A stretch of DNA of 64,000 nucleotides from Cyanophora paradoxa CCMP329 (GCA_004431415.1 QPMI01000428.1:124001-188000); one strand, 5' to 3'; shown: positions 29,301 to 64,000, counted from the stretch's first letter. Made by a program: numbers and translations. The notes: generated by a model from the sequence alone, not told the origin.

Positions 29301-32300
29301 ATGCCGTACAACCTAACACTCTCCAACAACGTTAACAGCCGTACAGCCGCGGCCGCTATTTTCCTGGTTCTGGTCTACTCGAGTTTCTGCACGGCGTTGG
29401 TCTCGGGTGCCGCCCTGGCCTTGCCCTGCCATAATTAAACGCCGGACGTGAGAAAAACGGGTTTCTCGCGTTGATTACGTTGATTGTGCCAGGTGCTCTC
29501 GAGGTTGTGGACGTGCCGCAGCTCGGGGACGTCATCACTCCTTCCGAGAACAATGTCATTTGCGACTCGGGCCTCTCTCCAGGCAACCCAGTGTGGTACA
29601 GTGCGCACTTCGTCATATCTTCTTTGACCTCGATCGCAACATTCGCTGGTCACGTGCAAGTGAACGTCAACCCGCGCTGATGCGGGCCCAGAAAACAATG
29701 CGACGTGTGTCGTATGGTGGCTCTGCTACGAGCCTGACGCCTGCGGCTCGATAGAGGTCGCGTTCCTTGCGGAGGACGGCGCAAACTACACGCGGGCGCA
29801 GCCCTGGGTGCCAGGTGAGATCGCGAGCTAGATCGAGACTTGACGCCGGGGCGCTGCGGCAGCTATCGGATTGATTGAGCGCTGGGACCCTCAGACACGG
29901 CCGACTGGATTTCAACGCCAAGCGCTCCTGTCACAAACGACACGCATTATCCGTGCGTATACGCGCCGCTCGAGGATTCCGGATCCGAGCTCGAGATCTA
30001 GACCCTAGGCCCCTAGATCTGTTGTCAACGCAAGTCGCCTCACCCGAAACGCGTGCGCAGCGGCTTCTTGATTGTGAAGTTCTCGTTCCGAATCGGCTTC
30101 CTCTCCGCCACAGTGCGTCACCAATCACGCAGCTTTCATTATGCATATGACAACTGTTCCTACATTAATCAATTGCAATATAATCTTGATCATCGCGTGC
30201 ACGATCATCACCGCAGAGAGTCAACTGGCTACCGCTCAGCCGGAGCCTCGTTTTGATGTGGAAGGACACTCGAACGGGGGTGGAAATCGACCCGAGCCTC
30301 CGGCGCGTCTACGCCGGCTCGCAGCTCTTCCAGGTCCCCATGTACTTCGACCGTGCGCTGCTCGATTGCATCATATATAAGCACACGCTCTGTGCCTCTG
30401 ACGCTCGTGCTGTACCTGCCAAAACGCAGCGCGCGGCAACGGCCCGCAGCTGGATATGATCACCTCCACCGGCTCCGACGCTTCCGACCTGATGAACCTA
30501 AGCAACTTAAACGTCGCGGTCCGCCAATGAATTCGAAGTTCCGCACTGCGGCAAAGCCGCTGCAATGAAGTCCTGCTTATTTTACACTGCGCTGTCGCTC
30601 AGGGCTACAACAAGAACTCTTACGGCCCCTTCCACGTCTATCTAAAGCAAGGCAAGCCAGCCGGCTTGCGCTAGTACTAGCTCAAAAACGAATCGAGAAA
30701 TCTTACGCGCCTTTCGAATTTGGGGGCAGGCTCCACGGGAACGCTCTTGTTTGACAACACGGACACGTCCGCCTCGTGGCGTGTCAAGCACCGCGCCCTC
30801 GGATCCTCTGCAAACTACACGTACTGGATGGACGGGTCCACAAAGTACAAGTGCGAGCATTTTCTGTTCTAGATCTATGGTTTGATTTGGATTATGAATA
30901 CCTGTGCTTAGCAACTCGATGACACTCGGCACATTCAACTACGCTGCGGAAATGCCGTCCGACGGGAGGCCTCTGGAGATTGTAGTGGAGACGCTTTCGG
31001 TGATCGACACCACCTGGAACTACACGGTCATTATTCTGCCCGTCGGGTCGCCCGCCGTCACGTACCCCCCCTGGACCGCCTCCCAGACGGCGATTGCGGA
31101 CGTTCTGACTTACAAGTGCGAATTGCGCTTGACGCCTGTTGATCGCGCGGAGGCGCCGGCCGACTTCTAATTACCCTTCGAACAGAGTCACTGTGAATGC
31201 AGCTGTTCCGTACTTCCGCGTCTGGTTCGGCACATCTGCATCGAACGAAGCTTACGTGCAGAGGAGCAGCAACAACACGATTCTCTGGGCTCATAACGGC
31301 GCAATCGCTCAATACGACATCGTGATTCCGTCTGCAAACGGGGTGCGCGTTCGTTCAAACTCGCCGCACCTTCGCACTGGTACTTGAACCGTTAACGCTG
31401 CCCTCAGTTTGGCGAGCGCAATCTCGTTTTCGACTTCCTCACGCCGCAAGGGAAGATTCCAAGGTCAGCTAATTATAACCTCACTGTTCCCGCGCGCGCG
31501 CCCGCAATGCCTAACGAGAGATCCGACGCTGCACCGCACCAGTGTGCTCGTGAAAGTGAAAGGCCTCGACGCGTTCGCGTGCTTCCCGTCCTCCGGCCGC
31601 GTCGCCGCTGGACGCCAGATCTTCGCGAGGGTCTCGGGCGCGACTGGAAGCGAGCGCCTTGTCTTCTCGTCAGACCTGCAGGGTGCCCATGTGCACCTGC
31701 CTCGATATTTAAACCCAGTCCGCTCTGTCCCAGTGGCGTTTGATGGGGGCTTGGGCAGTTACGCTCTCGGACTCGTCTGTGGTCACGCAAGCAAACCCTG
31801 TCGACACCAGCCCCAGCGGAGGGGTGACAGATCTGACGTACACAACATCGGTACGGCCTTCAGATCCGCACCCGCATTTCGTTCGCGTTGCGACCGTCCG
31901 CTCATGCTGAGTCGACGCCGGGTTCCTCGGCAGAGCGGGAAGGACAGCCTTGTCGTGACGTACCGCCTGCTTCCGAGCGTCGACTTCAGCGCCACGCCGC
32001 TCACTGTCGGCACCTGCTCGTACGCGGTCCTGGCTGCCGACGTGCAGTGCTCCCCTGCCCGAATCAGAAAGAGCTTCGCAGCATCAAACGTGCGTCCTCG
32101 AGCGGGATCCGGTCCATGCGAGACCGAACAGACGCAACTGACGGCTCCCTTCGCAGACCACCTGCGTCATCACCAAGCCCAGCGGCTCGGGCCTGGCCGA
32201 CCTGCAGACCAGCGACTTTGGGTTCGTCGCGGCGCGATCGGCGTTAGTGTCTTGCGCGCAGCGCGCGCGCCCTGACGAAGGACGGTCAGGGCTGGGGACG

Positions 32301-35300
32301 TGGTGGACGCGTCCATCGGGTCGCTGTCGGCGGTCACTGCCGCCGGCACGCAGCGCTGGACGCAGGTGTTCCTCGGGTCAGCGGCGGGCGCCACCAGCTT
32401 CGGCCCGACCTGGTCCCCCGCGGTCCTCGTCGCCTCGCAGCAGAGCCAGAATCTCATCCCCGCGTCGCGCTACGCCGTCGACGTGCTCGCCGTGGCTTCC
32501 GTCGTCTACAGCAAGTACAGGGTGGCCCTCGGCCAGCTAATCCAGGTCACGGTCCAGAGCGCGGCCGGCATTGCGATCCACGCGTCGGACTTTGCCGGAG
32601 ACATCGACCTCGCCGTCGCCTCCCCGACGGCCTCCGCGGACACTGTCCAGTTCTTCGTCAACCAGACCAAAGTGCGCACCTATATAATGTTTGCTTGCAT
32701 GGGCGCTTACTGCTTATATATATTGTATTTAACTTTTCCTCGCGGCAGCTCATCTCGAAGCCCTCCCCTCTGGCAAAGCTTCGCTGGGCGACCGAATTCG
32801 GGTCGTCTGACATTGTCGCGCCCAACGGGACGGTCATCGCCTTCGGGAGCGGCTCCTATGTTCAGACTGCGGATGCAAGCGTCTGCTGCGCGGCCACTCG
32901 GGTGCGCACGCGGCCGGCTGTCCCCTTGAGCTCCCGATTGCAAGAGTCTAACGTCGAACTCCATCTGCGCAGTTCTTCTCCGTCTTGGTGAACTACCTCC
33001 CGGATAGTACCGGCGCGTACCCGACGTTCCTGGCGAGCGACCTTACCTCGTCCGTCTCTGGCGCGACGACCACCATCGCCGAGGAGCGCGCCCCCGCCGC
33101 TTCCGGAAACGCGGTGCGCTTCTCTCAACTGCGACACCGCGAGCTTTAATTTTCTCTCGATTCGGCTCTGTCGCCAGCGCTGATCGACCTTCCCCGCCCC
33201 CGCAGTACGGCGTGACGTTCCGAGTCCCGGTGCAAGCGCCCTTGACGTACTCTCTGAGCTGGAATCCCTCGACGATCCTCGCCTCCGGAGTCGTCTACAG
33301 CTTCACCCCTACCATCATCATGCTGCAGCTGACCTGCCCCGCGAACGCCGCGAAGGGAACGACGGTGCGCCCTGCGATCCAAGAGAGGCGAAGTCCGCTG
33401 ACTTTTCTGCGTTAGATTGCATGCACGCTCAGCTCGTCCGCGGGATCGGCGGCGTACGACACTTCGCACATCGGCCAGCCCTACGTGCTGTACCCCGACG
33501 AGGGCACCTTCTCTCCATACACCCTCGTCAGCCCCGGAGTGTACTCGTTCACATTCACGAAGACGGATCTCGGGTCTGTTCACGTTCTGCTTGCGAGTGA
33601 TGATTGAAACGCGTTTCGGATTCTTTTTTATTTTGTTTAATCTCGTGTTTGCAGGACCTCGGCTTCAGCCATCCGCATCGACTTCGCTTCGTCGTACCTG
33701 CAAACGCTTTCGACTAGCGGTGATCGAAAGGTGCGGCGAAATCGAGCTCTGGGCTGCTGCTGCATGCATTTGCAGCCGACCGAAGGGGGCGCTCCCTGCA
33801 TGCAGGTCCTCGCCGCGACGTACACAACTCAATTCGTGAGCACCGTGTTGAGCTGCCCGCGGACCAGACTCCACGCGCTGGGCGGAACCGCCACGTGCTA
33901 CATGTGCGCACCAGGCTTCGCCGCGCGCACTCGCCGCACGTGAATATTGATCGCTGACCGCCTTCGTACAGCGACAAGGACACGTCCAGCAGTGGCATTC
34001 CAAACACTGACGTCTTCAACATTTCCAGCAGCGATCCCAGCCGAGTCTCCATTACCGCCATCACTCTCGTGAACGCGAACCGGGTTCGCGCGCGCGCGAT
34101 GGCCCCGTGAATTACCGGCTTGTTCTAAGCCTGACACTGATCGTGCGTGGCCCTGCAGCTGTCGTTCCAGCTGACGGTCGCGGCGGAGGCGCCCGTCGGG
34201 AACGTCTCCATTAGCGCCCACTACCAGAATCTGGAGGCGGTGAACCTGCAGGACGCGATCGTCATCGGGTCGCCTCTCACCGTCACGCTCCTCCGCGGCT
34301 CGCTCGCCTGCGACCGCGCCCGCATCGCCCTGGGGACCTCCGTGGACTGCCAGATCTCGACCTGGCCCGGCAGCATGGCGCTCGCGCTGTCGGACTTCGT
34401 GGCCGCCGCGACCGTGCCGGGCGGCAACCAGAACATCAACGGCTCCCTCGGCTTCACGGCGTCACCGAGCACCGGCAACCCGACGACCATCTCCGCCTCC
34501 TTCTTCACTGGCGGGCCGGCGCTGACGACGACCGTCCTCGTCGTCGAGGCGCTGCAGGTGCCCCGTCCGATCGTGGTGCGCGAGATCGCAGGCGAGCTAC
34601 GCTGAGCTGCAATGCCAGGTATTGTGCGCGAAAACGCGGGTTCAGGACGGATGCACCACGACCTGCACCATCCCCAAAGGTTCGCCGGCAATCCGATGTG
34701 ATTGTTCTCGAGCGCGCACCTGAACGCGCGCCGACGCAGCTGCAAGCTCGCCGGATTTGCTCGTCTCTGACTTGGCGCTTGCGGCCCCATCGCCCGCCTT
34801 CGGTTCTGTCAGCGGCCTGAGCGCGTCAGGCGGCGGAGCCCTCCAGTTCACGTACACGGGTGCGCTTGAATTGGTTTCGCGGCTGGCTAGCGCTCAGCTC
34901 GCAGCGGATTTCAACCGCACCCGTGTCCAGGCGCCCTGGGAGCCCCGACCGGAGTCACTCTCGGCTTCACGTACGGCACCAGCATCGACCCCGCCTCCTC
35001 CGTGTCGACCTCGGCGCTTCAGCAGGCGGTCTTTTCCGTGAGCATACCTTTGCTTTTATTATACAATTTCCTGCGGCAGTTCTCGTCGCTGAGCCGCGCT
35101 GACGCTCTCGTCGACGTTCGCCAGCTCTCGTCGCTCGGCACGCTGATGTGCGGCGTGCCCAGCACCAAAGCGTTCCCGTACGGCTCCTTCAAGATGCTGA
35201 AAGGCGTCAGCTACACTTGCTCGAGTGCGGATTCTGTGTGCCGCAGAGAGCTATTCACTCGCATGACGTTGGTCCCTTGTGCTGCGCTTCGCAGTCGCTC

Positions 35301-38300: not shown

Positions 38301-41300
38301 TACGGTGAAGTTGGACTTCCTTCAGACCGTCATCCAGACGATTGCGAACAACACAGCCAGCAAGGTTCCCGCGCGCCAATCTAGAGCCGATGTCGATGTC
38401 GCGCCGTCGATGTCAGGCGGCCCCTAACGGCGCCGCGTGCGCAGCTCCTGGTGGCCTCCTCCAAGATAACCTACATCGCAGCGACGGTCTCGTGCGCGCA
38501 AACCAGCGTCAACGCCTCCGCCGGCGCGACCGTCTGCTTCCTGAACAAGACGGCGGCCTCCGCCGCCTTCCCGTCCACCTCCTTCTTCATGCCGATCATC
38601 AACCACCCGGGGCGCCTCACCGTCGGGCCCGTAACAATCACCCCTGGGACGAACTCCACCTCGGTGCGCGCAGCGGGCGTCTCGCCTCCAAAGTCTTTGC
38701 TCGCGCGTCTTAATCCTAGGCCTGCTCGAACTCCGCAGGCGTACTTCACGCTCAGGGCGGCGGACTACCCCAATCCGGTCGGGACGTACTCCATTTCGGT
38801 GGCGTACACCGGGCTGAGCGGGGTCAATCTGGCGCCCGCCAACGTGTCGGGCGGCCCCTTCGCGATTCAATTCACGCGCCCGTCCGTCGGAGCTGCGGTC
38901 AACTGCGTCTCCACCCGCGTCCATTTGAGGGGCGGCTCGATCCGCTGCTACATCAACGCGACCGGGACGGCGTTCCCCAGCCAGGCCACCCTATCCACCA
39001 ATGTGCGCGCGCGCTTCTGTTCTGAGTGCTTTCGAAGCCAACTACGCGCCTGAGGGTGTTTCTTAGGTTCTTTTCACTGTTTCGTATAACGGCGGTTTCT
39101 CGCTGTCGAGCACAATGTCGGCGATCACTTACGTGTCGGGATCCAACTGGCGAGCCGTGCGTCGCCACATGCCCGGCCCTTTTCCTTTCTCTCGCCCTCT
39201 CACACCTCGAGCTCCCTCCAGGCGACGTTCGTGCTTTACGGGTACGGGTCCGGCGGCGTCGGAGGCGTCGTCAACGTCACGGTCGACTACAACGCCGCCG
39301 TGCTCGGCCCCGGCTTCTTCAACGACATCGACACGACGCCTATCGTCAACTCGCCTCTCGAAATCAGCGTCCTCGACGCACAGTTCACCTGCGATGGGCG
39401 GCGCATTGCGCTCACGAAGACTTTGTCCTGCAACATCACCGCGCGCGAGAGTTCACCCGCTATCCTTCTCTCCGATCTCGTCCCGGGTAGCATCAGCGCG
39501 CTTGTGCCGAACATTTCTCCCGAGGTAAAATCATCCACGTTAATCGCGGCTCTAAGCAAGCTCTCTTTCGACTGGACACCGACAAACGCCGGGGGCGCCG
39601 GACTCACCGCCACGTCGGCATCCATGGGCGACAATGGGGCCCGCACCCTTCAAGTTTCCTTCGTTACCGGCGGCGTAGCCACGGCTTCCATCTTCGTGCT
39701 CGCGGCCGACGGAAGCAGATTCATATGCCCATTGTGCGCCCTCGATCGCTCCATATGTATAGGACGTGCTGTTGCTGATCCGGTTCACAGGACGCGGCAA
39801 ACCGCGAACTGCACCCAGACGTGTTATATCGATCAAGGTGAGACGGATCTGTTCGCCCACTCTTGCGATTGTAACCTGCTAACCTCATGTACGACGCAGT
39901 AAGATATACGGACTCTTATGATGGCAATGTAATCAAATCCCGCTCTGTATCCCTCCTTCCTGAGGACTTCGTTGTCGCGGCGACCCACGGAACCGTCTCC
40001 AACATTCGCGTTGCACAAGTGACAAACAATCACGTCACCAACTCCTACTCCCCATCGCAATACTACGCGCTCTACTTCGATTACACAGGCAAATTCCCCC
40101 TAGATCTGATTCCCGCTCGAGATCTAGAATCTCGCTGACGAAGACCCCAGCTGCCCTCGGGTTGGGAGACACCGCTGCGAGCATTTCCGTTTCTTACAGC
40201 AGTTCCGTTGGTGGCGGGGCTCTGGGTTCAGCGCATTCTGTTAAAGCGGTACGTCGACTCTCGTCGCTCATGACCGCTAGGGTTTGTAGCTCGGCCATCC
40301 GTATGACCGGTGCCCCTGGACACGCGCAGCTGTGGGCGGAGAATCTTCGCTGCGGCCGCATCAATAATACCGCCCCGAACCAAGGCCTGTTCACTAACTT
40401 CAGGCTCCTGCACAACGCGTTGCAGCCCATCCAGTACGATTGCGTTGTTGACAAGGCTGCTGGCAGCGCGACCCTCCTGGCGTCAGACCTCTACCGGTCT
40501 ATACAAACCGAAATCTATCCCGGATCGAACACCTACTACGCCATGCTGGGCAGCGTAGAGCAATCGTCCAGCCCAGGCCCCATCGGCCTCAAGTGGAAGA
40601 TTACGCCAACGTCCACGGGAGTCAGGCCTTGGGCGCTCTACTTCACTCACGACGTGAGTACGTGCGGGCGTCCCTTCGACACCCGAAACGTGCAGTACAT
40701 CTCGGTGTCCCTGATATGCCCGTCTATCGTTTACGCCCCCAACGACACCGGGCACTGCAACATCACGGCCCAGGGGATCGAGCCGCCCCTGCTGCCCTCC
40801 TTCTTCTCCACCAGCTCGGACCGCGTCGCTGAATTCGGGAGCATCCTACCCGCGGACGAGAACTCGACGATCCTGACGTTCTCGTTCCGGACGATCAGCA
40901 CGGAACCTCCGAGCAGCACGGACCCCTACGCCCCGCGTGGGTTCATCAGGCTGGAACTCGACAACGCTCAGATCTTAGTGCCGGAGGGCTACACTGAATT
41001 CTACACGAGGGCGAATCTGTTCTCAGTTTGTGAGCTCCCGTTGCCATCTCTGGGATCCAACTTTCTCTCGTGAACTTTCGTCTGCTTGCAGATATCACAG
41101 GAATCTCCTGCGATCGTTACGTCACAATCGTGCGTGCATGACCTTCTTTGTTTTGCGAGCGCGCTTTCTCAAGTGCGCTCCACTCGCAGAACTACGAGAA
41201 AATTTCGTGCACGCTCTTCAAATCGACGCACTCATCCCTCCTAAGCCACACGGACTTCACCACTGTGGTCACAAACAATACAGTCCCGTCCGGCTATGTT

Positions 41301-50300: not shown

Positions 50301-53300
50301 CCGGCGCAAACTGAATGAATCTCATGACCAGGCAACGTGCACGCTTGCTCCCGAGACTGCGACCGACCTTCGCCTGGACGACTTTGCGGCCTCGCCCATC
50401 TCGAGCAACAAGACGGTGACCCTCGGAGACCTTTATGCCTGGCCGCCGGGGCGGGTCCGTCTCTTTCCTCGCACAGCATCGAGCTTGCGCTGAACTCTGC
50501 CGCAGTTCAACTTCTCCGTCGGCGCTTTCACGACCATCGGCAGCGCCAGCTTCTCGCTCAAGGCACAGTACTCGACGAACGTGACCTCGGCCACGACCTA
50601 CACGTCGACCTACGGTTTCGGGCCCGCGCTGGACTTCTCCCTGGCCTGTACCCCGACGAGCGTGATCTACGACGAGGCCACGGTTTGCGTCGTCCAGCAG
50701 CTCACGGGCTCGCCGTCTGTTTCGTCGTCGTCGTTCCTGGCAGCCCGCGTGCTCGACGGAGCAACGATGAACTGCGGCGCTTACACCGACATCACGGCCG
50801 GCAAGTTCAACTTCTCCTGCGTCAGCAAGGTGTCCGAGAGTGCGAACCCGGGTTCGATCGTCGTCGGCTGGAAGGGCAACGGCGGGGGCATTCTCCCCTA
50901 CTTCAACGTCACGCTCTTCAAGATCGTCTCGGAGATCAGCTGCAGCCCGTCCCGCGTGGCGGTGGGAGACAACACGACGTGCACGCTCACTGCGAACATC
51001 GCGATCGCTCCTAAGATTGCCGCCGGCATCGTGACCAGCACCCCGGGCTCCCTCTCGCTCGTCGGGCCGTGGCGGCAGTCCGGAAACGACATCGCGGCCA
51101 CGGCGACGGTCCTGATGCCCTCGCGCAACGAGACGGTCGAGGCCTCCCTCCAAGGCGGCGGAAAGAGCGCGCCGGACTTCCTGTCGCTCGTGCAAGTCGA
51201 CTCGATCTCCTGCGTGCCGGGCACTCGCGTCGCGCGCTCCGTCAAGGCGAACTGCACCGTCGTCCGGAAGACGGCCTCCCCGGACCTGTTAACGACCGAC
51301 CTGGCGCTGAACCACACCACATGCGCCTCGGGCTCCTCGTCGTTTACAGCCTTCAGCGGTCTGAGGGACGGACCTGCTTCGTCGGGAGACCTCATGTTCA
51401 CGTTCACGGCGAGCCAGCTGGTGGGCACCGGGGGCTGCGGGCAGACGCTCTACTACTCGAGCGCCATTGCCTCTGCTCGTGGAGTCGCGGCGACCGTTTC
51501 TCTCTCCGTCGTTTCCGTCCGCTTCGAATGCCCTACGATTATCTACAGATTTGGCACGGTTCGCGTCTTGAAGCACTGCCTTCTGCCCGCTTGCTTTAAT
51601 TTTAACCCTTTCCTGCGCAATAATCAGACCACTTGCATGATGCTCCCCGAGTCGGACCTATCGCCTTCCTTGCAGCTCAGCGATTTCGACGCTGTTCCGA
51701 TCGTGACCAACACGTCCCTCACCGTTGGCTCTCTGACTGCGTACCCCGCCGGTCGAGGGGTATGCCGTCCGCTTGGTGGCCGCGCCTACCGCCGCTGATA
51801 TCGATATCCCGCGCAGTTCACCTTCACGCTCGAGGGATTCGATGCGGTCGGCGACAACGCGACCGAGATTCAGGCCGTCTACTCGCAGGCCGTCGCGGGC
51901 GATGCTCTCCGCAGCCCCGCGGCCGTCTTCGGACCTTCGCTCGACTTCGTCCTCAACTGCACGCTCGCCGAGGTCGCCTTCAACCAGACGACCGAGTGCA
52001 AGATCAAGCAGCGCGTCGGCCGCCCGCTCCTGAACTCGAGCTATTTCGACGCGGCCGGCGTCGTCGACGGCGGCAGCATGGCGTGCGGCCCGTACACGGA
52101 CATCGCGGCTGGGGAGATCGCGTTCTCCTGCGTCAGCAAGCGCGTCAACCGCCTCTCGCCCGCGCAGATCCGCGTGAATTGGAAGGACCCCGCGGGCGGG
52201 CAGCTCGCAACCTTCCCCGTGGTCCTCAGGACGGTCTCAGCCCTGAGCTGCCTCCCCGCGCGCATCGCCGTGGGCGACAAGCTGACCTGCACGCTGAGCG
52301 CCAACTATCCCATTACGCCGGGCTTCACCCGCTCCGCCTCCTCCCTCGTGTCCGGCGGCGTGCTGTCCAACGTGGGCGTCTGGACGCAGTCGGGTGAGAA
52401 CCTCGTCATCACAGCGACCGCGAGCACCGCCGCCCGCAACGCGAGCATCACGGCCGAGCTCATCGAAGCGGTGGCGGGCAACGTGCCGGTCTCGCCCCCG
52501 TCGTTCGTCGAGATCGTCGCCGTCGATTCGATCACCTGCAGCCCCGGCACGCGCGTCCTGCTCAACACGGCCGCGAACTGCACGGTCAACAGGCAGGCGG
52601 ACTCACCTGACCTGCTCCTCTCGGATCTCGTCCTCAACCGCACGCTCTGCGGCGGCGCCGGCTCCGCCAACTTCACCGCCCTCGCCCTCGGCGAGGGGGG
52701 CAACCTTGTGTTCACGTTCCACGCCAACTCGCTGGTGGGGGGAGACTCGGCGGGCTGCGCCCTCCCCATTCTCTACGCCTCGAACATCTCCGCCCTGGGC
52801 AGCACCGCGGCCACCGCGACGTTCCTCGTGATCGACCGGTACACGAACTTCACCTGCGCCAGCCGCGCGATGCGCTGGGCCCGCCCCGCCACTTTCGACT
52901 GCGTCCTCCAGGCGGACTCGGCCGACGCGTCGAGCCCCGTCCGCACCGAGGACCTCGTCCTCCTGGCGCCTGCGGGCGTCGCGTTCACCCGCTCCTCGCT
53001 CACGCTGACGCTCTCCCACGAGTTCACCGCCGACGCCGTCTACTCGTTCCAGGTAAACTCCAATCAACCCAATGACCCGCCTGCCGCTCGCGCGCTTCAG
53101 CTGATCACCGTGGCCCGTTCGCAGTTCGTCTGGGCCCCGAGCGTAGTGCAGCCCGACTTCTACGGCACTCTGAACATTTCGGCGGTCTACCAGGTGGACA
53201 TCGTCGCCACGTCGCTCAGCTGCACGAACACCGGCAACCGCATCCCCGGGACGACGATGTCCTGCACGCTGAGCCGCGCGGCGGACTCCGTGTCTCTCGT

Positions 53301-56300
53301 GCCCGAGGACGTCTCGATCGCCGTCTTCAGAACGGGCAACGCGTCCGTCCCGGCGGTCGCGGCCGGAGGGGACCTGACCTTCACCTACACCCCGCCCGAT
53401 GTCGCAACTACACCCTTGCTCGGTAATTAATAGATGTCTCAAGATTAAATGATCGAGGTTCGTTGGTTGACGCGCGCCGTGCGCCTTTCGCGCAGGCGAT
53501 ATGGTCACTGTCAGCTACGCCAACACAATCGACCGAGACACCAATCTTGTGGGGAACAAAGCAAGCGGCGACCCTTCTAACAGCCGCGCCATATTCTACG
53601 TGGCCGCTGATCTGAACTGCCCCACGTCCCGCCTGCGACTTGGGGCCAGCACCACATGCACGCTGACTGTCAGGCCAGGGTGGTCGGTCCCTGTCCTCAG
53701 CGACCTCGCCGACTACGAGGTATTCCAGCTTTACCTGGTTCTCTGCGTCTATAAATTTAACCGGCTGCGACCTCAGGTCACGGGCGATGACCTTCTGAAT
53801 GCGTACGGGTCGATTCCAGTCACCGGAAGCACGCTGACATCGATCACGTTCACGGCGACGAACGCCGGGCTGAAGTCGACCATCAAGGTTTATTACAGCT
53901 CGTCTGTCAGCAGCGTCCGAACTGCTCTCGACACGTCCTTCGACGTGCGAAATTTCTTCGAAACTGTTGCTGCCGGCGAGTTCTTTGACTGCGCCATGGC
54001 GCGCGCGCGCGCAGCTCACCGTGATTGCGACGCGCGCCACGAACCCGGTCACCTGCGACAAGACCCGCATCGCCGTGCAGGGCGTCGCGCGGTGCACTCT
54101 GTGGAAGAGCGACAGCTCCGCGCCGTTCACCGGCGAGGACTTCGTCGACCAGTACCTCTCGCCGGCGTCGGCTCGCAATCCCGTCGTCACGGCCGGCAAC
54201 CTCGAGTTCGACTTCGAAACGACGCTGGCCAACGGGTCCGCTGATTTCTTCTCATTTCTAGGAAAACTGTATCTGAGTGCTTTCGTGTCAGGCCCATGTT
54301 TACATACACGCTCTCGTACGTGGCTTCGATTGGTGGGGGCTTCGCGGGGTCGACCAACATTAGCATCATCAAGGCGGACCTGCACTGCAGCCCGCAGCGC
54401 CGCGGCCCCAACACGACTTTCTCCTGCTCCGTCACTCCAACGGCGACCAGCGCGCCTCTTTTATTGTCGGATATTGCCGCTCCGTCCACCAATTCGTCCA
54501 TGATGATTCTGGGTCCGGCGCGCGTCAGCGCGAAGAACTCTTCTATTCTCGTTTTTGAGGGCAACACCATCGACGCGACCACCGCTTCGATATACCTGTC
54601 TTACAGCACGGAGGTACGAGAGCCAAAGACATTCGGGAATAGTTTGCTGACGGAAGAATGCTCACTCAGATGGGCGGAGCGCCGCTTGGAGCCTTCGTGT
54701 AAGCGTCTTTTCGACCTTGCGCGCGCGAAGAGTTTGCGACTGATCCCGCGTCGCAGAATGGCGGTCGTCGGAGCGCGCCTGAACTGCAATCCGCGCGTCC
54801 GTGCCGGCTCGCGCATCCAGTGCCAGATCCTTCGCGCGCCAGACTCGCCGGCGCTCACCACATCCGATGTCTTCGTGGCCGTCTACCGCATCGGCTACCG
54901 CCAGCTCTCCAACCGCCGCGCCTTCTCGCAGTCCGGCGACCACCTGCAGACGACGCTGCGCATCCCGCCGGCCCCCCTCACCGGCGAGGTCGGGCACGTG
55001 AGCGTCAACTACGGCGGCGGCTCGCTCGGCACCTTCTACGTGAGCTCACCGTGCCTTTTTACAATGAGCTATATCTTATAATCAATTAGTTTCTTAGCTC
55101 ACTATGCCTTCTTAGCGTTACCTGTACCTCCTCAAAATCTAACCGGCCCCGCGCGCCGCAGCCGATCGCCACGCTGAACTCCAACTTCACGGTCGTCTGG
55201 GGCACGCTCACCTGCAAGCAGCCCCGGCGCCGCGTCAACTCCATCGAGAGATGCCTCGTCAACCGCGCAGCGATCTCGTCCCCGCTCGAGCCGACGGACA
55301 TCGACGTGCCCACGATGCGCGGCCAGATTTCCGACCCCACCGTGCCGGTTGTGAACAACGGTTCGCTTGAGATCAACGTGACGATGTCGACGTACGGCAC
55401 GGTATCGCTGTCCACCTTCTGGTCAGCCTCTGTGGACGCGGACAAGGAGCAGATCCCGTCGACCGTGAACGTCACCGTGCTCGACGGGCGCGCCTCGTGC
55501 TCCCCGAGCCGCATCGCCGTCGGCGCGAACGTCAGCTGCGTCGTGCTGCCGAACGCGGGGTCGGCGGACCTGCTGGTCGAGGACGTCAAGCCGGCGCCCG
55601 TGCCCGGCGGCTACATCTCCACCGGCGACCTGGTCCCGGTGAACGGCAGCATCACGTTCAGCGCCCTTGCTGTGACCGCGAAGGACGCCGTGCCCGTGTC
55701 CGTCTCCTGGAGCGACGGGCTCGACGGCGGCGAGCTCGCGGCGCAGCTCGTGGATGTCGTTCGGGCGGACTTCGCGTGCCTCCAGCGCGCCCGCGAGTCG
55801 CTCGCGGCGCCCTGCACTCTGACGCCGGTCGGGCAGTCCCCGGCCCTGCTCGGCTCCGATTTCTACGCCCCGGTCCCGTCGAAGGCCGGCGCGTTCTCGG
55901 GCTACGCCGCGGGCGACAGCGGGATCCAGGCTTTCACGTTTGCCACGGCCGCGCTCGTTCCGTCCGTCTCGCTCTCCATCTCGTACAACGCGTCCATCCA
56001 GCCGTCGCTGCCGGACCTCCAGGCGGACGGCTCCCCGCAGACGATCATTTTCGTCGGCGGAGTCCTGTCGACGAACACGTCCCGCGTCGCCGTCGGGACC
56101 ACGGCGCACGTTTTCATCGCCAAGAAGGAGAACTCTTCGACGCTCGCCCTCTCCGACTTCGACGATCCCTCGTTCTCGCCTCTGCTCACCGAGGGCGCGG
56201 CCGCCATCTCTCGCGGCACCACCGACTCCGGGCTCGCTTACGCGTACACGATGACCGTCCCTGGCCGTACGGTCGCTTTGGCTAACTTCAGCTCCTCCGT

Positions 56301-59300
56301 CGGCGGCGGCCCCGTGGTGATGGACGTCGATCCCGCGATCACCGTCCTTGGTGCGAACCTCACCTGCTCGAGCCGTCGAGTCGCCGTCGGTACGGCCATC
56401 GAGTGCCACATCGCGCTCATCGGAGACTCGCCCAAGCTGTCGCCGGACGAGCTCGTCGTCTCCGTCACGCCCAGCGCCGCCGTCACGAACGACTCGCCGG
56501 CGCTGGCCAACGCCACCGACTCCGCGTTCCTGTACTCGTTCGTCGTGAACGTCGTCGCGCCGACAGCGGACGCCAGCATCTCCGTCCGCTACGCGGCGTC
56601 GATCGATCCCGAAACGCGCCACATCGCGTCGTCCCCGGCGCAGTTCGTCGCCATCGGTGAGCGTCCCTCCTCGCAACTTGAAGGTCGCCATTGATGCGTG
56701 CACGTGCGCTTGCAGGCGCTGACATGACCTGCTCGCACAACCGGCTGCGGGTCGGCGCGATCTCGACTTGCGACATAGCGAAGCGCACAGACAGCCCGGA
56801 CCTCCTCCTGTCGGACTTCACGCTCGTGAACAATTCGGCGGGCTCCTACGGCGCGGCATCTACCACGGCCGGCGGTGGCTTGAGCTTTGACTACACTTCT
56901 GAGGCCGTAACCGATGACAACGGGGCCACAATCCTGGTTCGCAATTCAGCGACACTACGTATTATACGTAATTGCCGTGCATTTACCGTGGTCTAGGTCC
57001 GCTATGCTCCGGCTCTCGACGAAGCTGCCAGCGTGATCGGAGGTGGAAACGTCACCGTTGTCATCATCGATGTCTCGTGCGTGTCTCTTTAGCTCGATCG
57101 CGAGCTCCGATCTCAAAGTGCTCTCTTGACCCCTCTTGCAATTGCTGCAGAGCGGCCTGCGACCTCTACCGCGCGGCCTTGGCGGTTTCGTTCAACTGCA
57201 CGTTGACGCGCGTCGACGGCAGCGCCGCCATCTCGGCCGCGGACTTCGGTGCCGCCTCCGTCGACCCGGCGGCCACCGCGGCGCTCTCGTCCTGGACGGC
57301 CACCGGCTCCGAGACCGACCCCGAGCTCTACGTGACGGTCACGACGGCGGCCGCGGCGACCAACGCCACGCTCACCTTCCCGTGGGCCAGCGCCGTCGGC
57401 GGCGGCTCGAAGACGACGCTGCTGAACGTCGTCGCCGGCAACGTGACCTGCGACAGGCTCCGCCTGGCGCTCAACGCGACGACGCGCTGCACCATCGGCC
57501 GCGTCGGCAGCTCGCCCGCGCTCGACGTCGCGGATTTCTTGGCGCTGGCCGCCAGCCCCGCGGACCTCGGCGAGTTCTCGGCGCTCTCGGCGGCGGACGG
57601 CGGAACGGTCGCCTTTACGTACCGCGCCCTCCTGCCGACGACGGAGCAGACGGCGTTCATCGTGAAGTATGCGGCCGCGGTGGACCCGTCGCAGCGAGAC
57701 GTGAACCCCACGAGCGTCAGCGTCGTGGTCCTCTCCGCCAGCCTCGTCTGCACCCCGGACCGCCGGGCCATCAACGCGCCGTTCTCCTGCTCTCTCAGCT
57801 CGCGCAACGACACGTGGCCGACCCTGTTGCCCGAGGACTTCGCCGCGCCTGCGATCAGTCCGGCGGGGGCAACGTTCACGCCGCTCGTGTCGGCCGGCGA
57901 CGCGGTCAACTTCACCGTCGCCGCGACCGTCCAGAGCCTCTACCCGAACCTCACGGTCTCCTGGAGCAGCGCCGCGCACGACCTCGCGGACGTCCCCGCC
58001 GTCGCGCCGTACCCGCTCACCGTCCTCTCCGCGAACGTCTCCTGCACGGGCCTGCGCCAGACGCTCGGGCACACGATCTCGTGCACGATCACGAGTCTGG
58101 ACCTCTCGCCCTGCCTCCTGATGCAAGAGCTGGCGGTCGACGTCCAGCCAGCGGGTGTCGCCACGCTCTCCAGCCTGTCGAGCCGCGGCCCCGCCGCCCA
58201 GTGCCTGTTCCTCGGAGAGAACGACACCGACACGGGCATGTACGCTTTCACGGTCACAAGCACCAACCTGACGGACAGCGGGAAGATCGTCGTCCGCTAC
58301 GCCTCCGCAATCGACCCGAGCACGGCAGTCGTGCAAGAAGTTCCGTTCGTCGTTGTCGGGGCGGACCTCGCGTGCACAGATCTCAGGCGCCGCCTGGGGG
58401 CCAGCGTCTCGTGCGAGCTCAAGAAGCAAGGCGGGGGCCCGGACCTCCTCGCCTCCGATTTCGAGCTGCTCCCGTGCAGCGCCGGCACGTACGGCAGCGT
58501 CACGCCGACGGCTTCGGGCGGCCTGCAGTTCCAACTGACCGCCACTGCGACCACGCCGGACGACGGCGCCCCGCTGGCAGTTCGCTTTGCGGCGCTGGCC
58601 GACGCGAACCAGACCCAGCTCGCGGCCTTCAACGTCGTCGTCATCGCTGCCAACTTCTCGTGCAGCAAGCCGCGCATCGCGGTCCAGTCGCCGTTCAACT
58701 GCTCCGCCTTCGCGCCTCTGCCCGGCAACAGCACCGCGACGCTCTCGCCATCCGACTTCGCCGCGCCCGTCCTCGTCCCTGCTGGATCCTTCGTCGCCGA
58801 CCAGTCCGGGTGGTTCGTACATGGCACGAACGAGCTCTACCACCGCTTCACGTCGGCGACTCCCGGGGCGGCGGCTGTCGTGTGGCTGTCCTGGGCGGCA
58901 TCCGTCGGAGGCGGATCGACGGAGGTTCTCGTGGACGTCATCGAAGCTCGGCTCGTCTGCACGACGCCGCGCCGGGCGGTCAACGTCTCCGCGCCCTGCC
59001 TCCTCGCCCGCGTGGGCGACTCCCCCGCGCTCCAGCTCGCGGACTTCCTGCAGCCAGGAGCGTCGCCGGCCGGGTTCGGCGTCTTCGGCGCGCTGGCCGT
59101 CGAGGCGGACGGCAACGTCTCCCTCTCCTACACCCCGCTGCGCCTCACGCCGACGACCGTGCTGTCCGTCCAGTACTCGTTCGCCGTGGACGACAGCGTG
59201 GCAGCCGTCACGGACTCTGGGTTCAACCTGGCGACCCTGGGGGCGCAGATCTCGTGCCCGGCGCGGCGCGCGATCGGCGCAACGCTGTCGTGCACAGTGT

Positions 59301-62300
59301 CGGCCGCCACGGATTCCGCGCCCCTGCAGGACGGCGACCTCATCGCCGCCTCGTACAGCCCGTCGGGCACGGTGTCGAACGTCTCCGCCCCCGCGTTCGC
59401 CGGGCCCTCGGCGCTCGTCACGGCCGTCATCGCCAGCACAGTCACCAACGTCACGGTCGTGCCGCGCTGGAGCGCCGCTGTTTCCACCGACTCGCATGCA
59501 TCGATGACCGGCATCGCGGCCAGCGTCGCGGTTGTAGGTCGGTTCTAGATCTATTACCTTTTTTGCGTGCATTCTGCAGGCGCAATCTCACCGCCTGCGC
59601 GTCAGACGCGACGCTCGTGTGCGGCGGCGTCGAGGTCGAGATCGGAGGCACGCTCTCCTGCAGCATTCAGGCCGTCTCTCCGTCCGTCATCCAGTTCAGC
59701 GACTTCCAGGGCCCTGTCTTGGACGCGACCTCCCTCGTGAGGAGGAACGTGCTGCAGCAGTTCGACTTCGCCGACGTGTCGGCCCTCGCGGTCGACGACA
59801 GCGGCCGTATCGCGCTCACCATCACGGGCCGGCGGCTCACGGAGCAGGCGATCGCGAGGGTTTCGGTCTCCTACGCCACAGCCGTCGACCCCTCGGGCTC
59901 GAGCCGGCTCATTCGCGAGGCCCCGCGCCGATTCCAGGTCACAGGGGCGATGCGTGTCGTCAGCTCCCGCTTCCTCGACAATGCGTTCCAAATTCAAATC
60001 GTCTTCACCGCCCCGGGCGCCGCCAGCGGCAACACGGAGGCCTTCCCGTCAGGAAACTACTTCACCGCCGACGGCGTGATCCTGCTCGGCGAGGGCGCGA
60101 CCTGCGCGTGGACCGCGCCGGCCGTCCTCACGTGCGACTCGACGGCCAACGCCACCATCATGCCCGGCGACCGCCTCGTCTTCCGCGCGCCGGTCGTCTC
60201 CTCCGACGGCACCGGCCGCTCCTTCTCCGGCTTCGTCATCATCGGGCCGCCCCTGAACCCGCCCGTGCCCGCCATCAACATCGACTACGTCCCGAGCGTC
60301 GGCTCCTGCCGCCTGGTCAAGGTCAAGGTCGTCCGCGTCTCTGGCGTGGCCCTCCGCGGGGCGCGCATCCGCTGGGCCTGCGCGGACAATGCCACCTGCG
60401 ACCTCTCCACCCGCGTCCAGGAGGGCATCGACGCGGCCAACAGGGGCAACAGCGCGCAACTGTCGATCTCCTCGCAGATCCCGACGGAGCAGACGTACAC
60501 CTTCTCGATATCGGCCTCGAACTTCCTCGGGGTCACCTCGAGCGTCGTCGTCTCCGTGTTCAAGTCCGCCGGGCTCCCGCCGACTCTGCAGGTCCGCGCC
60601 TCGAACTGACGCTGTCTAAATCTGGGGCCCATGTATCTGATCATGACGTTTCCTCTCGCTTAGATTGACGGCGGCTCGACGGTGTACACCCGCACGCCTG
60701 ACCTCACCACCATCAAGTGAGCTCATATTCGCGAGCTCTCAGTTCTATAGCATACCTAGGCCTAGATTTGTTGGACTCCCGCTTATCTCGACCGCTCTTC
60801 AGGGTGATCGCACTTCGCACCCAGTGCGAGACGGTACGCCGCGCACGTCGCACGCTGTCAAGAAAGACGACGTGTGCTGATTGTGCATCGCAGGACGATC
60901 CGGCCTTCTTCGTTGTTCAGCAGGACGATTTCCGCTGGTTCCGATCCGAGGGTGCGTGCCTTGTCTTTCTGTTTGGAGCAGAGAAGTTTTGACTGAATCT
61001 TTCTTCGGGCAGGCATTGACGTCGCCTGGCTCCCCCCCAGCTCGCTCCAAGCGCTGCTCCCAGCCTCGGTCGCCCTGGACAAGCCTGCGATCACGATCCC
61101 GCGGGGAACACTGCCGCCAGGAGAGGTCTACACGCTGACCATGGCGGCTGTCGACACGCTGCAGCAGCCGCCCACGCGAGCTTCGATTAACGTTACCGTA
61201 ATTGTTGCCAGGCAGCCTGTGGATGCTATCATCGCGGGCGGTGCATTTTATTTTTCATGCATCATCAACAGCAATTCCAAGCTCACTCGTCCGGTCCACT
61301 GGCGCAGGCGATCATGTCGTCTCGCCGTTCAGCACGTTCACGGCCGTGGGGACCCTGTCGCATGACCCCGACTACACGCCGGGGCGCTCGGCCGCCGGGA
61401 CCTCCAGCGTGCTGTTCTTCACGTGGATCTTCACCGGCGCGGACGGCCTGCCCGTGCACCGCACGCAGCGGACGACGGACTCTGTCCTATCGATCACGCC
61501 CGCCGACGCTGGGCTCAAGCAGAAGACCGCGTACACGCTGACGCTGCTGGTAGAGGCCGAGCGCTCGGGCGTCGCTGCAGAGTTCCTCTACGCGAACGAC
61601 ACTGCGTCGATCAGCGTCCAGGTCGCATCCGCGTCCACGCCCATTGTCAAGGTTCGCACAGACAAAATAATACAAGTACTGTAGGCTGCAGACGTGACCC
61701 TGTCGCCACAGATCACGGACGTCTTCCCCGCCGATCTCCTGTACGTCACGAAGTACCCCATCCAGATCCGGTGCTCGGCGATCCAGCCGGGCAACGCGAA
61801 GTCGGACAGCGAGATGCGCTTCGTCTGGAGCGCGCCGGGAGGGGAGCGGGAGCTCGCCAACCTCTCGTCGGTCACGTCGCGGAGCACGCTCGGCGCCCAC
61901 TCGATCTCGACCATCTTCATCACCGAGGAGTTCGGCCTGCACCGCGACCGCCTCTACGGCATCCGCTGCTCGGCCTACAACGAAGCCAGCGGCGCAGAAT
62001 CTGCTGGTGCGCACTAGAACTGCAGCTATTCGCTGCAATGCGCACTCGCTGCGCACTCCGACGCCTGAGCGGTGCGATCAGGGTCGGAGCAAATCTCCGT
62101 CCGCGTCATTTCAGGCCCGAAACCGGGCGAGTGTGCCGTGGTCCCGTCGTCCGGCGTCGCTCTTGAGACGCAGTTCGTCGTCACCTGTTCCGGCTGGAAC
62201 GCCGCCTACTCCGAAGACGCGAGCCTTCGCTACCAACTGAAGGTCTAGATCTTGCTCAAAAAGCTTCCTTTCCGGTCGAAATTGATCGACACTCATCGCA

Positions 62301-64000
62301 ATTCGATCGCATGCAGATGGTTACGCCGACCGGCTCCCTTGCGACGCTGACGCAACCGCGCTCGGCTCCTATCATGCGCACGTGCGCAATTGCATATGAT
62401 TTCAATTTCTATCTTCGATCATGGCGCTGATGCCTTGCGCAGACTTCTGTCAGCGACCGGCAGCGGCGCAACTAATGTTACTCTTGTGGTCTTCGTGACC
62501 GACCAACACGGCTCGACAACCGGTCAGTCGCCGCGTTTTGATCGGCTTCCGATTCGTAGAAGTCGTTTTCATTTCCGCTTCTTGCGCAGAGCATTTCCTC
62601 CAAGTGACGGTGACTAGCGCAATCATGCAGGCGCTATCAGAAGCGATACGCTCGAGCTCGAGCTCCCAATCCGGATCCGGAACGGGCTCCCAATCCGGGT
62701 CCGGAGCGGGCTCGCAGTCCGGATCCGGAACGGGCTCCCAATCCGGATCCGGGACGTCGGCCGCGGACGAGAAGACAATGAAGCTCGCCAAGGAGGCGCT
62801 GGTCTCGCTCCTCACGCAGGCGGGGAGCATCATCAGCGTCACCGACGACGACGGCGACCGCGAGAGCGTCATCGGCGTGGCCGTAAACGCGGCCCTCATG
62901 GTCACGGACGTCATGGAGATGGTCCTCGGGAGCTCGAAGCAGAACCCGGCGAGGGCCATCACGAGATTCGAGGACAAGGACGGGGCCATCCAGAGCCTGC
63001 TGGGGCCCCTGCTCCAGGCCGTCGCCTCCGTCGTCAACGCCAACGACACGACCAAAGAACAGGCTAGCTATAGTCTCCGAGCCCCAGAATCGCTCGCTCT
63101 TACCTTTGCTGAGCAATCATTAAATCTCGCAGGACGTGCAAGCCATGTCGGCTGTCTCCGTGCTTGCGGGGGTATCCGTCCGGTGCGTCAAATTAATTAA
63201 AACGAAAATACGAATATTAGTGCTGATCATGGTTGTCGATCGGCAGCACGTCGTCGAAGCGTGTCCAGGCGTCGCTAGCCTCACTGCTGCGGGAACTGCT
63301 CAAGGGGCTCGACCCGTGCACGGACTTCGCCGAAGTCCGCGACCTGATCATGGGGGCCGCCGACGCGTTCGTCGGGTGCGCGCGCTTGAACGGCAAACGC
63401 CGCTCAACTCTGTCCGCCCACTCACACCCTCGATCGCGATCATTATCGTTACCAGGTCGGGCAACTGGGCCGCGGAGGAAGGGAGCGAGTCGGAAATCTT
63501 CCGCATCATCGACGAACTCCTCAACGAGTTCTCGATGCAGTCCCTCGGCTGCAGCATCTGCGGCACCCAGGCAACCAGGGCTTCCATGTCTCGCATCACG
63601 CTCGCGTTTGGCCGCGGTGCGCTCTTTTCTGGTCGAATAGCAAATGACGAGTCGGCATCATTGCTTTGCTAAGTCGCGTCGCGCCGCCAGTCTGCTTCTC
63701 GGCCGACGCGGACTCTACCATCGTGACGGTGGGCAGCGCCGGGTACAAGATCGACACCGAGCTCCCGAAGGAAGTGAGGGACCTGGGCAAGGAGTACATC
63801 GGCGACGTCGCCGACAGCCTGCCTTTCAAGCTGACCGGCTACCTGGTTCGAATTCGCACCCCGAGTCGACTCGCTTCCGTCTCTTGACTAGTGCTCGCGC
63901 CCAGCGTTCACCCTACGTCGAGAAGAACAACACCGCAAAGGCGTTCAACCTCTCCACCGGTGTACTCAACGTTGGTGCGTGGCGTTTGTGCGACATGCAG
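29301..64000 (+). CDS. Giant secreted or membrane polycystin-1-like (REJ-domain) protein with a long array of ~100-aa C-x12-C beta repeats; 3' end beyond the window
   Basis: ATG at 29301 with signal peptide (...AAAAIFLVLVYSSFCTALVSG). Plus-strand exons rich in Ser/Thr/Ala/Val and N-glycosylation sequons, in frame at the junctions I traced. Recurrent C-x3-R-x3-G-x4-C...P.L..[SD]DF. REJ motifs after ~60.3 kb: YTFSISASNFLG, ITIPRGTLPPGEVYTLT, AIIAGG, LSHDPD, ECAVVPSSGVALETQFVVTCSGW, VFVTDQHGS. Single-gene continuity was not checked at every junction. Confidence 0.8.
62664..62756 (+). repeat. 24-bp coding tandem repeat (SQSGSG[T/A]G, about 4 copies)
   Basis: TCCCAATCCGGATCCGGAACGGGC and variants, about 3.9 units, just after the REJ domain. 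Confidence 0.85.

Follow-up and report, generated by a model that had tools for sequence, protein, structure and literature searches.

Results

In this study we analyzed a 64,000-nucleotide stretch of Cyanophora paradoxa CCMP329 DNA (GCA_004431415.1, QPMI01000428.1:124001-188000; the window, with positions counted from its first letter), which carries on its plus strand a long tandem array of immunoglobulin (Ig)-like units followed by a REJ domain. As part of our overall explanation of the locus, the DNA from 29301 to beyond 64000 is likely to be a single plus-strand gene of many exons and at least 35 kb. Over 29-64 kb the G+C content is 57-69% and the plus strand is dense in short open pieces, which is the pattern of an intron-rich eukaryote. 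A public model from EukProt, tig00020603_g11772.t1 (P0002), describes a plus-strand gene of 84 exons and 7,713 amino acids (aa) at 30952-62245. This model maps exactly onto the window for 7,705 of its 7,713 residues, and 76 of its 83 introns, with a median length of 70 nucleotides (nt), have GT..AG borders. Gene models of Cyanophora were produced with BRAKER1/Augustus trained on RNA-seq (PMC6704402). A preliminary description of this DNA had proposed one giant gene at this place, and the gene is indeed continuous over 31 kb: a single Augustus model spans 31.3 kb, and the Cyanophora paralog P0003 is colinear with both the gene head (29516-33499) and the gene tail (59605-63845).

Our comparisons indicate that P0002 is too short at both ends and also skips exons. 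Residues 20-315 of P0003 are colinear with 29516-31113 and reach upstream of the P0002 start; within this alignment, residues 20-254 match 29516-29599, 29700-29822, 30235-30354 and 30444-30848 before running into the first P0002 exon. The N-terminal head exons defined by this alignment (29495-30951, plus strand; about 255-270 residues) are not in P0002 and gave no Pfam match. Before them we propose a first exon at 29301-29403 (plus strand), also not in P0002, which would supply the start codon and a signal peptide. The peptide that opens at the ATG of 29301 is signal-like and reads MPYNLTLSNNVNSRT-AAAAIFLVLVYSSF-CTALVSG, with a basic n-region, AAAAIFLVLVYSSF as its core and an end of the form ALVSG followed by A. 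This putative exon would be spliced in phase to the next one through a GT donor that follows 29403 and an AG acceptor that precedes 29495. The exon and its 29403/29495 splice come from our own reading of the sequence and agree with the start and signal peptide suggested in the preliminary description.

At the other end, P0002 runs through AAG and then GTCTAG at 62242/62243 into a stop codon at 62246-62248, because the GT donor at 62243 is left unspliced. The intron retained in the model covers 62243-62317 on the plus strand, with GT at 62243 and CAG before 62318. At 62242 the window continues from ..RYQLK into MVTPTGSLATLTQPRSAPIMRT, and the corresponding stretch of P0003 reads ..RYQLKMINPAGGQIVTLTQPNSANVMRS. 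Paralogs, to which the following exon (62318-62382) can be aligned, carry on in frame at the donor (..RYQLK M..). Inside the model, three introns on the plus strand measure 805 nt (39525-40329), 798 nt (42352-43149) and 803 nt (46290-47092), whereas the remaining 80 measure 51-131 nt. The first of the three contains sequence coding for repeat units: one unit match, at 39378-39662, crosses the predicted donor and a second lies at 40123-40233, so P0002 appears to skip exons there. All three long introns look like exons missed by the gene predictor and not like true long introns. The possibility that they are copies of one mobile element was rejected, since they do not align with one another. We estimate the full protein at about 8,600-9,100 residues, about 8,300 of them within the window, which makes the earlier figure of 8,000+ aa right or slightly low.

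The tandem array of Ig-like units occupies 32036-59901 on the plus strand and comprises about 60-68 units of about 95-110 aa, most of which begin with Cys-x11-13-Cys. The motif C-x3-R-x3-x-x4-C (C-x3-R-x8-C), which had been noticed before, was counted about 25 times in the plus-strand frames of the 34-59 kb interval; the minus strand has almost none. When a profile made from the eight units of the long exon described below was iterated on the window, it gave 55 matches, all on the plus strand. A family-wide profile, iterated on all Cyanophora family members, gave 63 plus-strand matches against 0 on the minus strand over 32495-59901, and 60 matches on P0002 (residues 238-7092). These counts bear out the preliminary estimate of 50-65 units. 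Three stretches of the array, of 135-370 residues each, have no profile match and probably hold divergent units, which brings our own estimate to 60-68 modules. A single exon of 2,385 nt (57152-59536, plus strand; 795 aa) holds eight unbroken units, as had been reported for an exon of 2.4 kb. The mid-array exons gave no Pfam match.

The unit consensus is xxxxCxxxRxAxGxxxxC-x7-SPxLxxSD (then [F]), with a conserved Gly and a beta-rich remainder. Of 53 full units, 50 retain the Cys-x11-13-Cys pair, and 39 of 60 units have exactly two cysteines. The units make up a chain of 60+ Ig-like domains that is essentially free of linkers. Its composition is rich in Ala, Ser, Thr and Val and of secretory type, and N-x-S/T sequons number 133, compared with 64 +/- 7 in shuffled sequences. 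Adjacent units are only about 20% identical. By offset-identity comparison, units 23-42 form a four-unit super-repeat zone (47093-53140, plus strand), where units four apart have a mean identity of 0.36 and those at offsets 1-3 and 5-7 one of 0.16-0.19; units 3-16 and 51-58 have their best partners five to six units away. This pattern indicates that the array grew by duplication of blocks of four to six units. Judged by its DNA, the array is old: the sole tandem repeat detected by Tandem Repeats Finder over 29-64 kb is a linker of four 24-nt copies at 62662-62756.

None of the sequence searches placed the unit in a named family, in agreement with the preliminary description. No Pfam family matched the eight-unit exon at E <= 0.1, and none of 33 units scanned singly (E <= 1) gave a recurring Pfam family, with no match to Big_1, Invasin_D3 or Filamin; the PKD repeat (PF00801) matched neither the 33 units nor any exon scanned. 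One unit, modelled with AlphaFold2 on the alignment of the 33 units, gave an all-beta model with a predicted local distance difference test score (pLDDT) of 93.3 and a predicted template modelling score (pTM) of 0.84. In an exhaustive structural comparison this model matched FdeC (Z 10.9), invasin (10.5), InvD and InvE (both 10.1) and filamin repeats (8-9), and the best Foldseek match was filamin A repeat 17 (E 9e-4, TM-score 0.60-0.65; matches 0.6-0.68). A language-model feature search gave, at 0.85, clusters of Invasin_D3, Big_1 and Filamin, and we treat this as a lead only. The unit is thus confidently predicted to be a seven- to eight-strand Ig-like sandwich that superposes on solved Ig-like/E-set members, as the preliminary description had supposed. 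Of the two cysteines in the modelled unit, one closes strand 1 and the other lies within strand 2; their conservation and the adjacency of these strands in the model suggest a disulfide between the first two strands.

At the downstream end of the array lies a pre-REJ exon (59605-60591, plus strand). It contains the last unit pinned by cysteines, then a second beta sandwich that lacks the Cys pair, and finally some 100 residues whose fold is uncertain. When modelled in AlphaFold2 with four paralogs, this exon gave a pLDDT of 64.8; its residues 1-115 and 115-220 match Ig-like domains at Z 7.5-8.5, and residues 230-329 are of low confidence. The REJ domain (61015-62784, plus strand; about seven exons) is assigned from Pfam PF02010 together with paralog identity. 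On the window exons PF02010 matches 60997-61362 (E 6.7e-5, profile positions 36-93) and 61202-61681 (E 0.028, profile positions 82-208), in the right profile order, and each match falls singly below the Pfam cut-off because introns split the domain. The paralogs P0006 and P0007, which share 45-55% identity with the window across 61051-62236, match REJ with E values of 1.6e-26 (residues 1361-1755 of P0006) and 7e-30, covering profile positions 29-445 of 452. Such strong matches in paralogs of this identity make the assignment sound, so that a REJ domain does follow the array, as described earlier. The domain reaches about 62784, beyond the public stop, and the Pfam REJ match of the paralogs extends about 80 residues past that point. 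The four-copy repeat of 24 nt at 62662-62756 (plus strand; Tandem Repeats Finder score 155) encodes a Ser/Gly-rich linker of SQSGSGxG units, inserted at the border between the REJ end and the GAIN-like region; the paralogs do not have it.

Colinearity with the paralogs places two further regions after the REJ domain, both on the plus strand: a helical region of four exons positioned like GAIN subdomain A (62785-63615), and the first exon of a beta-rich region positioned like GAIN subdomain B (63690-63845). The matches at 62742-63062, 63139-63183, 63248-63400 and 63457-63615 are colinear with residues 1756-1952 of P0006 and 7064-7266 of P0003 at 38-80% identity, and the beta-rich exon corresponds to residues 1953-2003 and 7267-7320 of the same two proteins. 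Altogether P0001, P0003, P0006 and P0007 align past the public stop, to 63615-63845, and a further exon near 63.92-64.0 kb is tentative. The helical region 62785-63615 gave no Pfam GAIN match. A helical and then a beta region that is apparently GAIN-like in place and build, proposed in the preliminary description, can thus be located at 62.78-63.85 kb. The window ends about 90 residues ahead of the expected GPS, as judged from P0006, whose GPS-like motif lies at residues 2094-2100.

The ends of the four paralogs suggest what follows. In P0001, P0003, P0006 and P0007, all with complete ends, the beta stretch closes with ..I.F.F..P..LV.F....W..C.N.T..(17-25)..C-[DN]-H-[LM]-T-P-F.VG, and their tails share the GPS-like pattern W..C..(17-25)..C-[DN]-H-[LM]-T-P-F. 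The motif is followed, 40-85 residues on, by one strong transmembrane (TM) helix, behind which the chain ends in about 65-135 residues of basic tail; no PLAT, PKD_channel or 11-TM body was found in the four proteins, and P0006 and P0007 gave no Pfam match to PLAT or PKD_channel even at E <= 10. The GPS has been described as having a conserved Trp, two to four Cys and H-L cut before T/S, near the first TM helix and within a GAIN domain of about 300 residues in which helices precede strands (PMC9672506), and the paralog motif with its position near the TM helix appears to fit this description. By analogy with the four paralogs, this copy would also end in a GPS, a single TM helix and a short basic tail.

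The same unit family recurs widely in the Cyanophora genome. A profile search with the 33 units against 1.84 billion proteins returned P0002 and, in all, 86 proteins at E <= 1e-3; the 14 strongest matches, together with all clearly motif-rich ones, are Cyanophora models from at least 12 contigs. The iterated profile found 382 units among 18 Cyanophora models. These paralogs (tig00020824_g14228/30/31, tig00021489_g21700, tig00020553_g10755/56, tig00000405_g442 and others) share with this gene the head (in P0003 and P0013) and the REJ domain and tail; they are 30-55% identical to it but differ in unit number and super-repeat pattern, and their public models are mostly fragments. Two adjacent models, P0011 and P0001 (tig00020553_g10755 and g10756; 3,704 and 7,652 aa), are both full of units and, if one gene, would encode over 11,000 residues. 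Near-identical blocks recur in P0001, with the same 19-mer at six positions, which suggests that its array, unlike that of the gene studied here, expanded recently. Another model, P0004 (tig00020964_g16806, 4,754 aa), combines 27 units with TIG and K319L-like PKD domains and has five to seven predicted TM helices clustered at residues 3200-4202; its multi-pass ending is another type within the unit family. P0004 and the next gene models, P0010, P0027 and P0036, are probably pieces of one giant locus.

Outside Cyanophora, only weak relatives were found in the 33-unit profile search. P0018, on a metagenome scaffold of the ENA (L001:815-9481, ERZ23491056), is an intron-free open reading frame (ORF) of 2,888 aa with at least 13 Cys-hairpin units, followed by an ORF of 898 aa and then by a RabGAP-TBC gene, which marks the contig as eukaryotic. 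No REJ domain was found here, and P0018 is possibly a non-glaucophyte protein distantly related to the unit family. Weak matches to the unit profile also occur in a transcript of Ancoracysta twista (P0031, 1,497 aa; Cys pair in 4 of 4 stretches) and in a JGI metagenome protein (P0017, L002:420-4451; Cys pair in 10 of 10 stretches), which hints at a wider, thinly sampled distribution. Two bacterial candidates were rejected as kin. The SpaA_2 prealbumin-like domains of P0015 reached a summed E of 2.4e-36, but the match yields about 25 bits per stretch and straddles two adjacent bacterial domains (..G...V.CTI.N, end and start); in addition, Pfam SpaA misses the Cyanophora units, whose predicted fold is Ig-like and not Cna-B-like. 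The matches of P0025 type, which resemble bacterial InlB B-repeat-like sequences, are likewise motif-level and cross domain borders.

On the minus strand of the window, antisense ORFs of 819 aa (57116-59572) and 426 aa (55426-56703) lie opposite repeat exons. Neither matched Pfam or the repeat profile, and these long ORFs are probably a by-product of GC-rich coding sequence. GC-rich codon usage as a source of antisense ORFs is discussed for other loci in the genome paper (PMC6704402).

Discussion

The findings of this study lead us to favor, with good but not full confidence, the explanation that the gene encodes a type I, heavily N-glycosylated, single-pass REJ-GPS surface protein of about 8,600-9,100 residues with a rod of 60+ units. 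From its N-terminus the protein would consist of a signal peptide, a unique head of about 250-500 residues, the rod of 60+ Ig-like domains, the REJ domain and the GAIN-like region. In each rod domain, a member of a lineage-specific sequence family, a disulfide would staple the first strand to the second. Beyond the window we expect a GPS autoproteolysis site of the form C-x-H-L-T-P-F, cut between L and T, then a single helix in the membrane and, on the cytoplasmic side, a short basic tail. Cleavage at the GPS would take place in the secretory pathway, and the N-terminal rod would remain non-covalently attached to the membrane stub. At about 4 nm per domain, the extended rod would measure about 0.25 micrometre. 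Such a molecule may serve in a coat of the cell or flagellar surface, in adhesion or as a hair-like filament, with an anchor that releases or signals under load.

Several considerations weigh against this explanation. The public annotation puts the gene end at 62245, and the status of the locus as a single transcript rests on gene models and paralogs. A word-index search with the gene tail at 62499-63197 (residues 82-188) found no deposited fragment. The window stops before the GPS, the TM helix and the stop codon of this copy. The GAIN identity is a well-placed inference, drawn from where the region lies, what it is composed of and a single motif: at E <= 10 neither the GPS nor the GAIN profile of Pfam matches the tails of P0006 and P0007, searches of PDB sequences queried with P0006 or a profile of P0006+P0007 gave chance-level matches only, and a word-index search with P0006 1756-2165, seeking annotated GPS/GAIN proteins, returned P0006 alone. 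The disulfide, glycosylation, cleavage and surface location are all predicted features.

One could instead take the public annotation at its word, in which case the product would be a secreted array protein that ends at 62245 with a truncated REJ domain, and the tail exons would belong to a separate gene, or the region to several genes. The Augustus model, trained with RNA-seq hints (PMC6704402), does stop at 62246-62248. However, this stop lies three bases past a canonical donor at which four paralogs continue in frame (..YQLK then M..), the exon after 62317 aligns to these same four paralogs, and their REJ domain runs about 80 residues past the stop, so that the model would split the REJ domain in two. 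The same model also lacks the P0003-like head and skips unit-coding sequence at 39.5 kb. We therefore regard the annotated gene end as improbable. Even less probable, in our judgement the least so of the alternatives considered here, is that the gene is decaying or not expressed, one copy in a large family that expanded recently, and that only GC-rich codon bias keeps it open. The spread of the family over at least 12 contigs would be in line with such an expansion, and word-index searches gave no transcript-derived fragments; the search with the eight-unit exon found no match in a length range that left out the 7,713-aa model. Yet all 84 mapped exons are open and in phase, the Cys pair persists in 50 of 53 units, and sequons occur at twice the chance level. 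The low identity of about 20% between adjacent units suggests an array that is old and maintained, and there are no DNA-level repeats apart from one short linker.

A further question is whether the protein is a polycystin-1-type receptor, the label given in the preliminary description, which would require beyond the window, as in polycystin-1 proper (PKD1, PKD1L1-3, PKDREJ and SpREJ3-6), a PLAT/LH2 domain behind the first TM helix and about 11 TM helices, the last six of them forming a channel-like domain that pairs with a PKD2-like channel. A REJ domain followed by a GAIN-like region is a hallmark of the PKD1 family (PMC1934368, PMC9672506), the window stops ahead of the membrane part of this copy, and P0004, a more distant family member, has several predicted TM helices. 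However, all four paralogs that align to the tail have one TM helix followed by about 65-135 residues and neither PLAT nor PKD_channel. The closest of them in the tail, P0006, at 29-80% identity exon by exon, is single-pass, and P0004 has no match to REJ, PLAT or PKD_channel. We consider a true polycystin-1 very unlikely, slightly more so than a gene ending at the annotated stop, and the label does not hold in its strict sense, given paralogs with one TM helix and without PLAT, PKD_channel or PKD repeats. In a broad sense, as applied to the SpREJ proteins of the sea urchin, which are defined by REJ plus GPS, the gene probably does belong to the PKD1/REJ family. REJ, a GPS-like motif, one TM helix and a short tail are all found in P0001, P0003, P0006 and P0007, and the REJ and pre-GPS parts of this gene are colinear with them.

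What is new here is a lineage-specific Ig-like module in 60+ copies on a probable single-pass REJ-GPS surface protein; the single-pass layout was already known. No paper on these proteins turned up in full-text literature searches that combined Cyanophora with REJ or polycystin, and the genome paper does not mention them (PMC6704402). The combination of REJ with GAIN/GPS has been studied almost solely in animals, owing to kidney disease and adhesion G protein-coupled receptors. The glaucophyte family would join this module to one membrane helix without a channel or seven-transmembrane body, a layout that helps to ask what GPS autoproteolysis is for. The unit itself constitutes a well-defined domain family that Pfam does not contain; a single genome holds over 380 copies of it, and its fold is predicted with confidence. 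In addition, the public Cyanophora models of these genes are clipped at both ends and skip exons, so that proteome surveys under-count and mis-size them.

The flagella of Cyanophora bear hairs of two kinds, and its surface is distinctive; the proteins of both are unknown (PMC6704402), and the unit family offers a concrete candidate for such flagellar-hair or surface proteins. A link between this gene family and the flagellar hairs is speculation on our part. Carried further, the idea would be that a family of about a dozen giant genes builds the flagellar hairs or outer coat of this wall-less glaucophyte, each filament being one chain of 60+ Ig-like domains attached to the membrane solely by a self-cleaved REJ-GAIN joint, a proposal that we think doubtful but worth stating. 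If it is true, the REJ-GAIN module known from polycystins and adhesion G protein-coupled receptors would have begun, or served early in Archaeplastida, as a force-sensitive anchor of extracellular filaments, independent of a channel or seven-transmembrane partner.

Several known systems resemble parts of this protein. The Chlamydomonas FMG1B protein is a heavily N-glycosylated chain of 34 Ig-like repeats that forms the ciliary glycocalyx, a surface coat (bioRxiv 10.1101/2024.09.28.615573). Like the Cyanophora gene, it has Ig-like repeats of about 110 aa with low self-similarity and one conserved Cys pair each, although this pair is at repeat positions 60 and 91 in FMG1B but at unit positions 5 and 18 in Cyanophora; no REJ/GPS module is described for FMG1B, and the likeness is one of description only (bioRxiv 10.1101/2024.09.28.615573). 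In green algae, mastigonemes are anchored by PKD2 (PMC7265326). The Big_1-type domains of invasin, intimin and FdeC and the repeats of filamin, which are the best structural matches of the predicted unit, likewise form rods as tandem arrays. The unit superposes on the invasin-type domains with a root-mean-square deviation of 2.1-2.3 over 90-91 residues at Z 10.9-10.1, at a sequence identity of 6-13%, and its pair of cysteines between the first and second strands is a feature of the Cyanophora family, unlike invasin and filamin domains.

The closest counterparts in layout are the sea-urchin proteins SpREJ1, SpREJ8 and SpREJ9, which have a REJ domain, a GPS just before the first TM helix and a single TM helix (PMC1934368), and thus provide an animal precedent. 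They share with the layout suggested for Cyanophora a large glycosylated ectodomain, REJ, GPS and one TM helix (PMC1934368). However, the SpREJ proteins, likened here by description and layout, are far smaller (SpREJ1, 210 kDa) and belong to animal sperm, and their ectodomains carry C-type lectin, EGF or PKD repeats where the Cyanophora gene has 60+ Cys-pinned Ig-like units. Human PKD1 resembles this gene in its tandem Ig-like array, its REJ domain and a GAIN/GPS by the membrane (PMC9672506). PKD1 differs in having 16 PKD repeats (PF00801), domains of the LRR, WSC and C-type lectin kinds, PLAT, and 11 TM helices with a channel-like part; no Cyanophora unit matches PKD repeats, and the paralogs have one TM helix and no PLAT. 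The Cyanophora protein would be about twice as long as PKD1.

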